From sequence record NC_031120.1: 64,000 nt of DNA; one strand, given 5' to 3'. Under the pieces are notes generated by a model. It did no database searches. It was given only the letters and a program-made list of their open reading frames with translations, and had not been told where the DNA came from. The first letter of the stretch is position 1. Each line of letters opens with the position of its first letter. Below are positions 8,498 to 64,000 of this stretch, one piece after another. The translations under genes and the position numbers were made by a program.

Positions 8498-9254
8498 ATC
8501 TTTTGCTTTCAGAAAGCTGCTTCAACTGATGCGAGGTTTCTTCCATCGCGTTGATGAGTTCGTTAATCTGCTTCATGAACAGACCGAACAGCTCCACCCA
8601 GTCAGAGGCCATATCGACCATCTTGATAATCTCCCCGGCTGTGGTCGGGTGAATCTGGGTATCGCTGATGATATCAACGCTGACACCGATAGTTTCAATG
8701 TTGCGGTTGATGTTCTTCTTCAGCTTTTTAGTCAGCTCAGTGTGCAGGGCTTTTGCCCGGGCCAGTACCGACTCGATATCACCGGCATTGTGATAAACCT
8801 TTTCCAGCGGACGGTGGTCAGTAGACGTTGTCGTGTAAGACGAGGCCAGCTTTTTCACCAGGTCCTGTGGGTCGACGGTCTTCAGCGGATAACGGAAGTC
8901 TTTGTAGCGGAACGTGCCCGGTACAGACAAATCACCTTTCGCATGGGTAAAGGCTGCCAGCTGAGCCGTCACCGGGTCCAGCACACCCGACACGATATCT
9001 TGCAGTACGGACCACACGGACTCCAGGCGCTGAACGTGGTCAATCATGTAGACGTTCAAACCCGGCGGAACCGGTACCAACATACCACGGAAATTCATAA
9101 ACTTTTCTTTGCGCATCCAACGCGCCAGTTCACCGGCTTCTTCCACCGTTGCGACCGCTTCGGTCACTTTCTGATTGTCGGTCATTACGCCCGGCAGAAT
9201 CGTTGACACTTTCGAGGCAAAAGACGAAAGCGCAGCAATAGGGTTCAGGTTCAT
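8496..9254 (-). CDS. Probable virion protein (late gene)
   Basis: GAGG RBS before ATG 9254; preceded by the same CTTAGTATG motif as the tail sheath gene. Confidence 0.7.
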   Translation of the reverse strand: MNLNPIAALSSFASKVSTILPGVMTDNQKVTEAVATVEEAGELARWMRKEKFMNFRGMLVPVPPGLNVYMIDHVQRLESVWSVLQDIVSGVLDPVTAQLAAFTHAKGDLSVPGTFRYKDFRYPLKTVDPQDLVKKLASSYTTTSTDHRPLEKVYHNAGDIESVLARAKALHTELTKKLKKNINRNIETIGVSVDIISDTQIHPTTAGEIIKMVDMASDWVELFGLFMKQINELINAMEETSHQLKQLSESKR

Positions 9255-9286: not shown

Positions 9287-9295
9287 CATACTAAG
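9287..9295 (-). promoter_or_regulatory. Putative late promoter CTTAGTATG
   Basis: Identical 9-mer upstream of sheath gene; contains the TATG late-promoter core known for phiKZ-like nvRNAP. Confidence 0.6.
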
Positions 9296-9298
9296 TCT

Positions 9299-9325
9299 TT
9301 TTACGGCTATACCCTGTGTTATGTA
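9299..9325 (+). promoter_or_regulatory. Putative middle promoter
   Basis: TTTTACGGC-N12-TATGTA upstream of the uvsX operon. Confidence 0.55.
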
Positions 9326-47677: not shown

Positions 47678-49735
47678 TTAGTTCTCCCGACGGTAAACTT
47701 TGATGGTGGTGTTGAACTGAGTCAGCAGCACACCGCCGTACGCGTTCAGATCCAGAGTTACGGAGTAACCGTTGGAAATGTCTTCCGCGGTGAAGTACGC
47801 GTTCGGAGTCACGTCGGCGATACCGTCGAGTTTGCCGTTCAGGCGCTCGATGATACGCTTGTTGATTTCCTTCGCCACTTCGTCACGCGTCAGACGACTT
47901 TCACCCGACATGTCCGCCCACACACGGTCAGAGACACGGTAGACGTAAGTCATGATGAAGTTGAACAGCGCATTGTTCAGCACCGAGCGCTCTTCGTCGT
48001 AGATAGACTGGATCGCTGGGATGAACAAACGGTAGTAGTCGTAAGAACGGGCAGTGATGAGCGACACATCCCAGTCGGATGCGTACACATCGTTGCCTTT
48101 CCACGGCATGCTCAGATCCGCCAGGTCTTCGATGATGGTCAGCTCACCACGGCTAAAGCGCGCAGCCGGTTCGGCCTGGCCTTCGCCTGAACCCAGGTAC
48201 TTCGAGAAGAAGTTTGCCAGGGTGTAGTTCATCGGCACAGGCTTCTTGTAAGAAGACCCGCGGATGAGAGCTGTCTGACCGGTCACCATCCCACGCGCTG
48301 CGGCAGTGCCGTAACGAGCAGACTCTGGAACAGAGGTGATGAGTTCGATCAGGGCAATCTTCGCGCCTTCTTCGGTCTGGAGGTCATTACGACCCTGATC
48401 GTAGACGTGCGTTGCCAGCGTCAGGAAGGTGTTGCGTGACTTACCAATGAAGTTCACACACGCCGCCTTGGTATCGAAGCTGAAACCGGAATCCCAGAAG
48501 CAACCCAGGGAGTATTTCAGTTCGTTATCGTAGCTTACTTTCCCACCGTCGGGGAACAGCAGCATTTCACGACGCACCAGTTCGTCATAAGCATCATTGC
48601 CCATGGTGCCATCGCTACCACCTTGCAGGTAGTGGATGTTGGTGGCACTGTAGACCGTTTTACCGGTTTCAGTTGCCGGGTTAACCTGGAAGCCGTCGTA
48701 CGGCTGGCCAGTCAGATCCATACCGCCGAACAGGTCGATCAGGTACGGGTCAGAAACCGTCGCCGAAGAGTTCGCGGCGTTGACAGCAGCTTGCGCCAGC
48801 TTCAGTACCTTCTCCAGTTCCTCATGATACACATGGAAACCTTCGAACGGACCGTAGTTTGGCAGCTGACCAACGTCAGGCGTAGTCTTACGATACGCGT
48901 CCGCAACGACTTCTTCGAAGTCCAGCGGCGTTCTCATCGGCTGATAGTATGCATCGGGCTTAAAGCTGAAGTTGATGCTGGACATGGAGGTGAGGGTCTT
49001 CCAGATAACTGGAGACGTTACCCCTGCCAGGGTTTCAAACCACTGGAGCGTGTAAACACGACCACCTACCGCCTGCTGGTATGCAGAGGTGAGTGCCGGA
49101 GATGTTTTCTCGTTCAGCGGGATCAGCTTATGGCCGAAGCCGTTACAGTCTGCGCCAGCGTACGGTGCTTTGATATCGTAGATCGGATACATCTTAGACT
49201 TCGCACCACCGGTGCCGACTAAGGTGCCTTCAATCTCAATCGCAGTTCCGAATGCCGGAGCAGTGTCGTCGATCAGCAGACTGCGCAGTACGACCAGGAT
49301 ACCATCCACCTGAGCGGTGACTTTTGGTTTACCTGCGGCGTCGTACACCACTTTACCACCGCTGTCACGTTCGTACTGAGGCACTTTCGTGGCCAGCACA
49401 TCCGCGTACAAACGGAAGGTTGCGGTTTTCGCATCGTCCGGGACCAGACGTTGGTACATCGCTTCGTTGCCGTTCGCGTTGAACATTGCCTGATAAGGCG
49501 TGTTGAACGTTGCGTACGGACCACGGAGGTCGAACACGCTGCGGCCAAGCAGATCGAGCGCGTTATCCCCGTATAACGGGAACGCTTCGTTATCTACCCC
49601 ACGCGCAGCGAAGGTGAAGATCAGCGGCTTATGAATCGGGTCGCCCGTAGGCGTCCGTACAAGGTCGGGTACAGAGTTGTCTTGCATCCCTTCCTTGAAA
49701 TTCAACGGCGCAGCGTTACGTGGAATATAGGTCAT
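47678..49735 (-). CDS. Tail sheath protein (phiKZ gp29-like)
   Basis: 685 aa from ATG 49735 (GGAG RBS); YLQGGSDG and FWDSGF sheath-like motifs; synteny. Confidence 0.85.
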   Translation of the reverse strand: MTYIPRNAAPLNFKEGMQDNSVPDLVRTPTGDPIHKPLIFTFAARGVDNEAFPLYGDNALDLLGRSVFDLRGPYATFNTPYQAMFNANGNEAMYQRLVPDDAKTATFRLYADVLATKVPQYERDSGGKVVYDAAGKPKVTAQVDGILVVLRSLLIDDTAPAFGTAIEIEGTLVGTGGAKSKMYPIYDIKAPYAGADCNGFGHKLIPLNEKTSPALTSAYQQAVGGRVYTLQWFETLAGVTSPVIWKTLTSMSSINFSFKPDAYYQPMRTPLDFEEVVADAYRKTTPDVGQLPNYGPFEGFHVYHEELEKVLKLAQAAVNAANSSATVSDPYLIDLFGGMDLTGQPYDGFQVNPATETGKTVYSATNIHYLQGGSDGTMGNDAYDELVRREMLLFPDGGKVSYDNELKYSLGCFWDSGFSFDTKAACVNFIGKSRNTFLTLATHVYDQGRNDLQTEEGAKIALIELITSVPESARYGTAAARGMVTGQTALIRGSSYKKPVPMNYTLANFFSKYLGSGEGQAEPAARFSRGELTIIEDLADLSMPWKGNDVYASDWDVSLITARSYDYYRLFIPAIQSIYDEERSVLNNALFNFIMTYVYRVSDRVWADMSGESRLTRDEVAKEINKRIIERLNGKLDGIADVTPNAYFTAEDISNGYSVTLDLNAYGGVLLTQFNTTIKVYRREN

Positions 49736-49773: not shown

Positions 49774-49782
49774 CATACTAAG
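49774..49782 (-). promoter_or_regulatory. Putative late promoter CTTAGTATG
   Basis: Identical to motif at 9287; 39 nt upstream of sheath start. Confidence 0.65.
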
Positions 49783-62066: not shown

Positions 62067-62609
62067 ATGTTTCTGATTCAATCGCACAAAGACCTGTTAA
62101 CCAACAGCATGTATCGAGACTGTGAAGACGCTAAGCAGTACCGCATCCCAGTCAGTATTAATCACATGGAATACCTGCGTAAACTCTCTTACCTGGCAAC
62201 TGTCGAGGATGGCGTTGTAACGCACGTACAGGCATTGACGGCGGTAGACGATACAATCTACGTCTACGTCGATAAAATCTCACCACAGCTGATTAACGAG
62301 CTGAGAATGGTACTCCGTCCGGGGGTGGTTGCTGCACCCGGTAAGTTTTACGTTGTCTGTAAACCTGAAGGGCGGGACAGTCGTGTCCCGGCAGTGACTT
62401 ACGGATTCGTTATTCCGAAAGAGATGCAATCCATGGAGAAACTCGTGCCGCTTATTGGGAGAGAGAATGCGGTCGCGCAATTACATTTTATTTCTCAACT
62501 TGATAATCCGCAGCATGAAGCGGTTATGAACATGTCACCGGACGAACAACTGGCGACGCAGTTTGTTGCAGCCGGTCTTAAATTTGTAAATGTGTTTTAT
62601 CCGTTATAA
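62067..62609 (+). CDS. Hypothetical protein, paralogue family
   Basis: AAGGAG RBS, 180 aa. Confidence 0.8.
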   Translation: MFLIQSHKDLLTNSMYRDCEDAKQYRIPVSINHMEYLRKLSYLATVEDGVVTHVQALTAVDDTIYVYVDKISPQLINELRMVLRPGVVAAPGKFYVVCKPEGRDSRVPAVTYGFVIPKEMQSMEKLVPLIGRENAVAQLHFISQLDNPQHEAVMNMSPDEQLATQFVAAGLKFVNVFYPL

Positions 62610-62642
62610 AAATCGGGGAGCTTCGGCTCCCTGTTTTTTTTT
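62608..62642. terminator. Intrinsic terminator, possibly bidirectional
   Basis: GGGAGC-TTCG-GCTCCC with T-tract downstream and AAAAA upstream. Confidence 0.85.
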
Positions 62643-62880
62643 GTTTCAGCCCTTGTGGGTGCTCACTTTTTAACCCGTTTTTGTACAAGAAATAACCAGT
62701 GGAAATGACCCCTCTAAAACGCACTACAACGAGACGGATACCCCACCCGGTACACTTGGGTTCGAAGGGGTGGTTCATCGCAATACAGAGCGGTACAGAG
62801 CGAATACGCGCCATCCCCGACCGCCAGTTTCGGATGCCGGGCAATCCGCAGACGCCGAATCGCCGATCACACGTTGGGTA

Positions 62881-63275
62881 GCGCTAGCGCGTTTGGAGGG
62901 GAAAAGTGATTAAATTTTAAACAAACGAGTCTTTGCGAGTTTGTTCCGATTGGTTGTTTTTTAACCGATTCTACTGCCAGCCTCCAGCTGGCTAAGTTTT
63001 AATCAATTTAAAAAAATTCTCTTTTAAAAACAGTTACTTAGGTTATATCTACCCTACCCCCGGAGGGGTAGGATAAAAAATCCTTCTATTAGACGCGATC
63101 ACGCGTCACGCGTTTCCTACAGGATCTTTTAAAAGAATATATTAATATTAATTATAATTATCCCGTAGGGATAATAATTAAATTAATTAAAACTAATAAA
63201 CTCTACGAGTTAGAAATTACTAACGCGGGTGTGTGGGCGCGCGCACGATCCTTAACCTGCCGACAGGCTGTTTAA
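62881..63275. other. AT-rich non-coding palindrome/hairpin cluster (candidate origin or DNA-handling site)
   Basis: Near-pure AT runs interleaved with short perfect inverted repeats and ACGCG repeats; no credible ORF. Confidence 0.45.
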
Positions 63276-63295
63276 AAAATAACCAACCGGAGCGG

Positions 63296-63550
63296 CTGGA
63301 AATCCAATTACAGATTTCCCCAGTGTTATGCTCGATGGCATGACTCGACCCATGACATCATCCAAAACTTTGCCCCTGGCTGAAATACTCCAGGGGATTT
63401 TTTGGAGAGCCCATCTCACGACAGGGTGAGACGCGTCTTCTCGGCGAAGGTTAGTCGGGTACGGAACCCGCGGTGGGATCAACATCGCGGGTATTTTTCA
63501 TCCTGTCCAAGCATTGCTGTGTTCGCCTCGGCCAACCGGGGCGCTTTTTC
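63296..63550 (+). ncRNA. Dense hairpin array, candidate structured RNA(s)
   Basis: At least 5 stems, several with G-U pairs on the + strand; three followed by T-tracts. Confidence 0.4.
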
Positions 63551-63617
63551 GAGAGTCCTGCCTAGGGTTGTCGACAAAGCGAAAATACGTTCAGCCTAAC
63601 ACTCAACGTGATTTTGT

Positions 63618-63626
63618 TTTAGTATG
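63618..63626 (+). promoter_or_regulatory. Putative late promoter TTTAGTATG
   Basis: Matches YTTAGTATG at 9287 and 49774; no RBS or ORF downstream. Confidence 0.55.
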
Positions 63627-63941
63627 TTCAGAGTTTCAGGTTCCCGCCGGGCGTTCACCTGGCTGGTACCGCGGTAGCCTCAGGGGCGCTCCACCCCGAT
63701 GGGCCGTCACCCGTCGTCCTTGCCGGTGAGCTTACCACTGGCCATGCTTCGGTGCGGTGTCCCTGAGGTGCGACCGAATTCGGCGTTGCGTCGAAGAAAC
63801 GCCCAGCGTGTAGAACCGCTGGGTTGGGGGAAATCTCCGTCGGAGGTGATCTTTGGTCTTGGCGGCTCGGAAAGACGAGAGGGGGATGTCTGCACTCTGC
63901 GAAGCGCTCGGACATCGCTGAACCAAATTCAGGTATTTTTT
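63626..63941 (+). ncRNA. Candidate ~300-nt multi-domain structured RNA, no recognised class
   Basis: Starts at the G of a TATG motif; 5' GTTCAG complementary to 3' CTGAAC; 12-bp long-range helix plus about 7 local stems with G-U pairs; ends in hairpin + TATTTTTT. Confidence 0.6.
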
Positions 63942-64000
63942 ACAGGTCGGGGTCTTGATGTGTTCAAACCCAACTTGCCAACACCAGGGAAAAAAATATC

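Follow-up and report, generated by a model that had tools for sequence, protein, structure and literature searches.

A structured non-coding RNA of SPN3US-like jumbo phages with a 3' module common to temperate phages

What does a phage keep in a stretch of its genome that is left without open reading frames and still recurs in its relatives? The window, that is, the whole stretch of 64,000 nucleotides analysed here, is the final 64 kb of the genome of Erwinia phage vB_EamM_Caitlin (NC_031120.1; 241,147 bp), window coordinates being the record position minus 177,147. It closes with an ORF-free gap (Table 1) that begins after gp278, the last annotated gene, whose end lies at 62609. Directly past the window end begins gp1, whose product is an HslV-family peptidase (phrog_1040), and 3' of gp1 on the same strand lie a tRNA-Trp, 546 nt into the record, and then six further tRNAs. 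A preliminary description, made from the letters of the sequence, had placed in this gap a late, phage-specific structured RNA that could form dimers or rings. Whether such an RNA exists, where it begins and ends, how widely it is distributed and what it may do are the questions addressed below.

A structured RNA at a constant site of jumbo phage genomes

The element at 63626-63941 was found by BLAST in 63 records of SPN3US-like jumbo phages from four genera, Machinavirus, Seoulvirus (SPN3US and its relatives), Erskinevirus and Wellingtonvirus. Its position is constant, always the same non-coding site, and in the relatives that were scanned for tRNAs these are located 3' of the RNA on the same strand. 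Most of the deposited records carry no annotation at the element, and some draw hypothetical proteins there, in differing frames and even on the opposite strand; the RNA has gone unannotated or mis-annotated in this manner in at least 63 jumbo phage genomes. The gene located 3' of the RNA differs among relatives, being HslV-like, phrog_20200, the small terminase, Ant-like or a collagen-repeat ORF. The uncharacterised family phrog_20200 is encoded directly 3' of the RNA in the Huxley group, SNU4/9 and the Wellington group, with a faint resemblance in SNU29 and SPAsTU, and was not found in the Caitlin window nor in the first 5 kb of the record.

These observations describe a real gene for a structured non-coding RNA of the plus strand, and one that is strongly conserved. 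The plus strand of 63626-63941 folds with -139.6 kcal/mol (z = -2.36 versus shuffles), whereas the minus strand folds no better than shuffles (z = -0.66). Covariation was tested on a 19-sequence alignment (A3) spanning from the junction hub to the 3' end, with an RNAalifold consensus structure. On this structure, which derives from the same alignments used to test covariation, compensatory changes, altering both sides of the pair, were found in 29 of the 62 predicted pairs versus 8-14 in slid controls; 90.5% of the cells were paired, and 0 of 500 shuffles attained the observed values. The fold energy of the alignment was -110.5 on the plus strand versus -81.3 on the reverse complement. Moreover, several G-U pairs are constant in all or most sequences, and these place the RNA on the plus strand because they work only there. 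Indels of 1-2 nt between close relatives, for instance Caitlin and ChrisDB, break every reading frame, and the variable sites are spread over the three phases as 67, 71 and 64, with no 3-base periodicity. Hence the element is not protein-coding; neither an open frame that is kept, nor indels in threes, nor third-position variation was observed.

Searches for a known RNA family were negative. Rfam 15 gave no match at gathering score anywhere in the 64-kb window and noise only at E up to 10 in 62600-64000, and nothing was found within the element in seven relatives, in 15 prophage loci or in locus L337. The families without a match include GOLLD, ROOL, pRNA, RNase P, tmRNA, 6S, SRP, group I/II introns, known ribozymes and riboswitches. 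ARAGORN found neither tRNA nor tmRNA in the window, and no description of the RNA was found in the literature.

The preliminary description is therefore supported in part. All the sequences quoted in it were confirmed at their positions. Its plus-strand structured non-coding RNA is borne out by the covariation, the strand asymmetry of folding, the G-U pairs and the broken frames, and its statement that the RNA belongs to no known family by the Rfam and ARAGORN searches. Covariation among jumbo-phage homologues was one of the checks that it had proposed. The term 'phage-specific' fails in the narrow sense, since the 3' third is common to many temperate phages and a plasmid.

The surroundings of the gene show features of their own. 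Upstream of it, 63305-63550 holds a series of small transcription-unit-like modules, candidate small RNAs that are partly kept in other genera. Farther upstream, a block of 29% GC (63090-63200) is located between GC-rich inverted repeats and contains a sigma-70-like match at 63129-63158; it is kept in Huxley, SNU43, Wellington and L297, and its role may be that of an early promoter or of some other site at DNA level.

The gene itself is split by an HNH endonuclease cassette of 615 bp in Wellington, Kwan and one metagenomic relative. The cassette is inserted on the 5' side of the invariant core, at a distance of a few bases, and brings along a hairpin and a T-run of its own plus a second copy of a short helix strand; the RNA of the phages that bear it would be made as two pieces or as one with a large insert. 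Its identification as a group I intron was rejected, the flanks of the ORF being too short on either side. The location of a homing endonuclease cassette bases away from the core fits a highly constrained target.

Architecture and predicted ends of the transcript

At least 11 helices make up the RNA, the 3' one capped by a GNRA loop, and its core is near-invariant and for the most part unpaired (Table 1). In its 5' part, the GGU of the invariant UUCAGGU pairs with ACC 63668-70; 11 of 15 single-sequence folds show this pairing, and the inner pairs of the helix covary. The helices 63677-85/63761-69, 63722-28/63736-42, 63802-08/63817-23, 63835-38/63842-45 and 63882-98/63903-19, already drawn in the preliminary description, are upheld by covariation. 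Its stem 63697-716 found weak support, and its stems 63782-803 and 63856-876 gave way to the hairpin 63779-85 with 63789-95 and to the CUCG/CGAG hairpin of the core, respectively. The closure of the RNA by its two ends is seen in the minimum-energy fold of Caitlin, with CUGAAC 63918-23; it shows no covariation and is inconsistent in the single-sequence folds of relatives, and the pairing involves invariant or Caitlin-specific bases.

Table 1. Features of the RNA gene and its surroundings (window positions, unless preceded by a locus handle)
Feature	Position	Strand	Remarks
ORF-free gap	62610-64000		about 1.4 kb; contains RNA element 63626-63941
TTACAG-N13-TTATG promoter-like site	63308-63330		followed by three hairpin-plus-T-run terminators, about 63373-63403, 63466-63498 and 63524-63550
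TAACAC upstream element	63597-63602	+	about 24-29 nt before the predicted start; TAACAC or CAACAC in all five clades
TTTAGTATG	63618-63626	+	TATG 63623-63626; G63626 is the predicted transcription start
Predicted RNA body	63626-63923	+	about 300 nt in Caitlin; about 380-430 nt in Seoulvirus and Erskinevirus
UUCAGGU	63635-63641	+	invariant in 18 of 18 sequences
Peripheral domain, length variable	63642-63667	+	26 nt in Caitlin; 70-110 nt in Seoulvirus, Erskinevirus and Wellingtonvirus
Junction hub, TACCGCGGTA (first palindrome of the preliminary description)	63667-63676	+	non-palindromic in most relatives
Long helix, 63677-85 with 63761-69	63677-63769	+	6 of 9 pairs compensatory
Hairpin inside long helix	63722-28 with 63736-42	+	3 of 5 pairs compensatory
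CCGAATTCGG (second palindrome)	63774-63795	+	overlaps hairpin 63779-85 with 63789-95, 3 of 7 pairs compensatory
3' module	63794-63925	+	about 130 nt; common to temperate phages and a Serratia plasmid
Hairpin, 63802-08 with 63817-23	63802-63823	+	4 of 7 pairs compensatory
Short helix, 63827-29 with 63849-51	63827-63851	+	around covarying hairpin 63835-38 with 63842-45
GGAGGTGATC	63842-63851	+	long Shine-Dalgarno-like string, half sequestered by CUCC in a 4-bp hairpin
Near-invariant core	63857-63880	+	includes hairpin CUCG/CGAG, 63866-69 with 63876-79
3' helix, 63882-98 with 63903-19	63882-63919	+	GNRA tetraloop GCGA 63899-63902
Weak hairpin CTGAAC/TTCAG and T-run 63934-63941	63918-63941	+	likely 3' end in Caitlin
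TTACAGG-N12-GATGTG, promoter-like	63940-63962	+	putatively for the downstream HslV-like gene; outside the RNA; kept in relatives
CTTAGTATG, 8/9 version of TTTAGTATG	49774-49782	-	precedes tail sheath gene
Tail sheath ORF	47678-49735	-	phrog_3242
phrog_20200 ORFs	L009:2096-2476; L004:2326-2703; L269:1629-2366		
HNH cassette	L027:12390-13004 (Erwinia phage Wellington)		169-aa ORF; also in L269 (Kwan) and L019
3' module copy, plasmid pJSRIV002_2	L309:2456-2586		

Conservation is concentrated towards the 3' end. The core 63857-63880 is invariant among all the jumbo phages found by BLAST, and over 54 distinct sequences it is 93-100% identical, a range that the search pattern itself partly imposed in the case of the IMG/VR contigs; the loop of its hairpin has 6, 7 or 8 nt depending on the phage. 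In the 3' helix, compensatory changes occur in 9 of 14 pairs of the jumbo-phage alignment and in 13 of 14 of the joint set with prophages, the tetraloop is always GNRA, and G63899 and A63902 are 100% conserved. Most relatives, and the prophage module as well, have versions of GGAGGTGATC, and no conserved start codon or frame was found 3' of it.

Transcription of the RNA probably begins at a TATG promoter of the phiKZ type, such as is also located before the sheath gene. The consensus of the phiKZ late promoters is TATG, with G as +1 (PMC4666361). The motif at 63618-63626 had been noticed before as shared with the sheath gene and with the gene starting at 9254, and it is indeed present and precedes both genes in its 8/9 version CTTAGTATG. 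Its count in the window does not exceed chance, 8.2 matches with one mismatch being expected and 5 observed. TTAGTATG also precedes the tail sheath gene, and the arrangement TAACAC-N-TTAGTATG is found again at 9287-9321 on the minus strand, before the protein gene starting at 9254. We infer that TAACAC 63597-63602 is a promoter element. The TATG motif is kept in three of the five clades, the Caitlin group, Seoulvirus and Erskinevirus, and is missing from the Huxley and Wellington groups, which retain TAACAC or CAACAC; a start at G63626 is therefore likely for Caitlin and not universal. In Seoulvirus and Erskinevirus a covarying hairpin starts exactly at the G of TATG, which fits a primary 5' end. 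The putative label 'late' is taken solely from the likeness to the sheath promoter. Two further strings, TTTTTCGAGA and CCTAACAC, were not recurrent promoter motifs within the window. A small hairpin with an ACAAAG loop, located 5' of the promoter, is able to pair only in certain clades and was left out of the RNA.

The 3' end is more variable among relatives. The CTGAAC/TTCAG terminator hairpin is present only in Caitlin and ChrisDB, a T-run is located 3' of the RNA in 6 of 18 relatives, and other relatives have a ribosome-binding site and an ATG within 15-25 nt 3' of the RNA. The proposal of two exclusive 3' folds is not supported, as the terminator hairpin is absent from most relatives. In the aligned relatives, conserved exclusive terminator/antiterminator helices before a conserved gene were not found, and the downstream gene varies.

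The 3' module in temperate phages and a plasmid

A covariance model, R1, was built from the 3' module (alignment A5), and it scores 122.6 bits on the Caitlin window. The RNA of Erwinia phage pEa_SNUABM_6 (L008) lacks a central stretch of about 140 nt, which reaches from the junction hub up to the hairpin preceding the 3' module, and retains the module itself (111.7 bits). The first trace outside jumbo phages was a marginal 40-nt BLAST match in a search of plasmids, to the Serratia plasmid pJSRIV002_2. There R1 gave 44 bits (E = 2e-11), with the 3' helix compensated and GNRA-capped. The plasmid is a MOBP mobilisable one, and just 3' of its module copy, from about 2599 onward, an unannotated ORF with collagen-like Gly-Pro-X repeats looks tail-fibre-like.

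Scanning IMG/VR with the core sequence as is added 44 viral contigs, 5-95 kb long and in most cases 20-60 kb. R1 matched all of the IMG/VR contigs, scoring 34-54 bits over 45 loci, and its matches at E below 1e-5 amount to 62 loci. With alignments A6 and A7 fitted to the model, both-side changes were seen in 18 of 22 pairs in the IMG/VR contigs, versus 3-9 in slid controls, and in 17 of 22 pairs in the joint set to which the jumbo phages were added, versus 6-10. R1 defines a new RNA family, characterised by the covariance-model match and the covarying GNRA-capped 3' helix.

In temperate phages the module has no tRNAs in its vicinity. Among five contigs that were checked, the module is 3' of an Rz-type spanin gene in three and of a Rha-like regulator gene in one; the next gene is the small terminase in one and an Ant-like or uncharacterised gene in others. 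In the cultured Yersinia phage vB_YenM_29.18 the module is located between Rz1 and the small terminase, with another 4-bp hairpin in place of the core hairpin. Many of the prophage and contig copies carry their own terminator. In one viral contig an Rfam int-alpA RNA (RF02996, 45 bits) is found about 20 nt past the module (L342:3815-3879, minus strand).

Other searches gave no additional members. Complete E. coli genomes gave no BLAST match. A 17-base pattern used on metagenome and genome contigs was too loose, its 240 loci being false by R1; the one weak R1 match of that scan, L051, is a coding region for a G-G-S-x-G-R-E-G peptide. In a synteny search anchored on HslV, the gap before the HslV-like gene of Pseudomonas phage EL had no R1 match. 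That gap (L305:2351-3000, 650 nt) has z = -6.6 versus shuffles, its relatives being 97-99% identical and thus too alike for covariation.

Candidate functions and comparison with known RNAs

Large structured RNAs with such covariation and an invariant core are rare; catalytic RNAs, regulatory sponges and assemblies that form cages are among the few so far characterised. The module described here is common to dozens of temperate phages, with putative hosts of the Yersinia and Serratia type, which points to a host-directed function independent of the phage transcription system. The interpretation preferred here, with a little better than even chances as judged from sequence, is that of an independent gene for a stable, horizontally shared, trans-acting late RNA, made as its own transcript, the invariant core of which would act on a conserved host factor. 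The RNA polymerase of the phage itself would start at G63626 from the TAACAC...TTAGTATG promoter in Caitlin, and the transcript would end at the T-run 63934-41. The module would then bind, through its core, a conserved Enterobacterales host factor, either a protein or a ribonucleoprotein, and the 5' domains of the jumbo phages would be scaffold added around the module. The core is common to unrelated phages with different transcription machineries, its flanks are variable and it often has its own terminator, and hence a conserved host factor is the most likely partner of the module. The varying downstream genes, the separate promoter-like element before hslV and the terminators after prophage copies argue for independence from the neighbours. 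Against this interpretation, the TATG is missing from the Huxley and Wellington groups, the Yersinia variant of the vB_YenM_29.18 type has a differing core hairpin, and several phages have an ORF bearing a ribosome-binding site 15-25 nt past the RNA with no terminator, an arrangement that would fit a 5' leader equally well.

A bolder and less probable proposal makes the 130-nt module an RNA device that phages trade horizontally, either a new class of ribozyme or a decoy for a conserved Enterobacterales factor (e.g. of the translation, RNA-decay or defence machinery). It would have been acquired separately by nucleus-forming jumbo phages and by lambdoid temperate phages, and the jumbo phages would have built an ornate RNA of 300-430 nt around it.

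Alternatively, the RNA may act in cis on late mRNAs, either as a 5' leader or as a module between cistrons for processing or stability, and would then control translation or decay of the next gene (small terminase, HslV-like, phrog_20200). The orientation of the RNA matches that of the downstream genes at every locus, a Shine-Dalgarno sequence and an ATG are found 12-25 nt past the 3' helix in SNU4/9/10, Huxley, Seoulvirus, Yersinia and L310-type phages, the prophage copies are within the late operon, between lysis and packaging genes, and the RNA contains the Shine-Dalgarno-like GGAGGTGATC. This explanation is nevertheless rather unlikely. The next gene is not a conserved one, an intrinsic terminator or T-run comes after many copies, in Caitlin a separate promoter-like element precedes hslV, the relatives showed no conserved alternative pairing of terminator and antiterminator, and both the size of the RNA and its invariant core are unusual for a simple leader.

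The near-invariant, mostly unpaired core between covarying helices, together with a conserved GNRA loop suggesting tertiary docking, could also be that of a catalytic RNA, a new self-cleaving or processing ribozyme that would set transcript ends in late operons or in the transcript of the tRNA island. The location of the RNA in long polycistronic late transcripts, and upstream of tRNAs in jumbo phages, would suit such a role. No Rfam ribozyme family was matched at E up to 10, however, and no cleavage-site signature is readable in the sequence, so that a putative ribozyme appears improbable.

Even less credit can be given to a function in the line of the preliminary description, a multimerising scaffold resembling a packaging RNA or an RNA cage and joined through the two palindromes. 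Both 10-nt palindromes do exist, two perfect ones in 324 nt having P about 0.03 at the window's own rate, and GOLLD and ROOL, large phage RNAs found near tRNA islands, form homo-oligomeric cages (bioRxiv 10.1101/2024.12.08.627333). The palindromes are poorly conserved, however: 3 of 19 relatives keep the first, the second retains its 8-nt core alone in 14 of 19 sequences, and neither is present in the Wellington clade. The bases of both are occupied in covarying intramolecular helices, the whole 5' part is missing from the temperate-phage module, and Rfam pRNA, GOLLD and ROOL gave no match. Dimers or rings driven by these palindromes, and with them the scaffold, are thus very improbable.

Finally, a protein-coding region or a DNA-level site (origin, packaging site) in place of an RNA gene, which long open frames in a GC-rich stretch, the hypothetical proteins annotated in several deposited records and the closeness of the prophage module to terminase genes might suggest, can practically be dismissed in view of the frame-breaking indels, the lack of codon periodicity, the disagreement of the annotated ORFs in frame and strand among genomes, the invariant G-U pairs and the strand-asymmetric folding energy.

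The RNA described here is a defined, testable subject for the study of jumbo phage infection, and R1 provides a new covariance model for phage annotation. Among known systems, the pRNA of phi29, an analogue of the packaging scaffold proposed in the preliminary description, is likewise a phage-encoded structured RNA; it multimerises via complementary loops, whereas no conserved intermolecular pairing was seen here, and its Rfam model gave no match. The module shares with CsrB/CsrC, the protein-sequestering RNAs of Enterobacterales, several GGA-containing hairpin loops or junctions and a putative trans-acting role. It differs from them in having 3-4 GGA motifs instead of about 20 and a long invariant core besides, and it has no Rfam match to them. 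The tRNA gene cluster of phage T4 encodes small stable non-coding RNAs of uncharacterised function and contains homing endonuclease genes. These RNAs are shorter than the Caitlin-type RNA, and to our knowledge they have no wider distribution in temperate phages.

Nearest in kind are GOLLD and ROOL, as ornate phage RNAs adjoining tRNA islands. Both are structured phage RNAs with a conserved 3' region and a variable 5' region, often located beside tRNA islands, and form homo-oligomeric cages (bioRxiv 10.1101/2024.12.08.627333). The Caitlin-type RNA differs from them in that it has no match to their covariance models, is shorter (300-430 nt), has module copies in temperate phages away from tRNAs, and carries candidate self-complementary palindromes that are not conserved. 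Like them, it is phage-encoded and heavily structured, with a conserved 3' part and a variable 5' part, and its jumbo-phage copies head a tRNA island.
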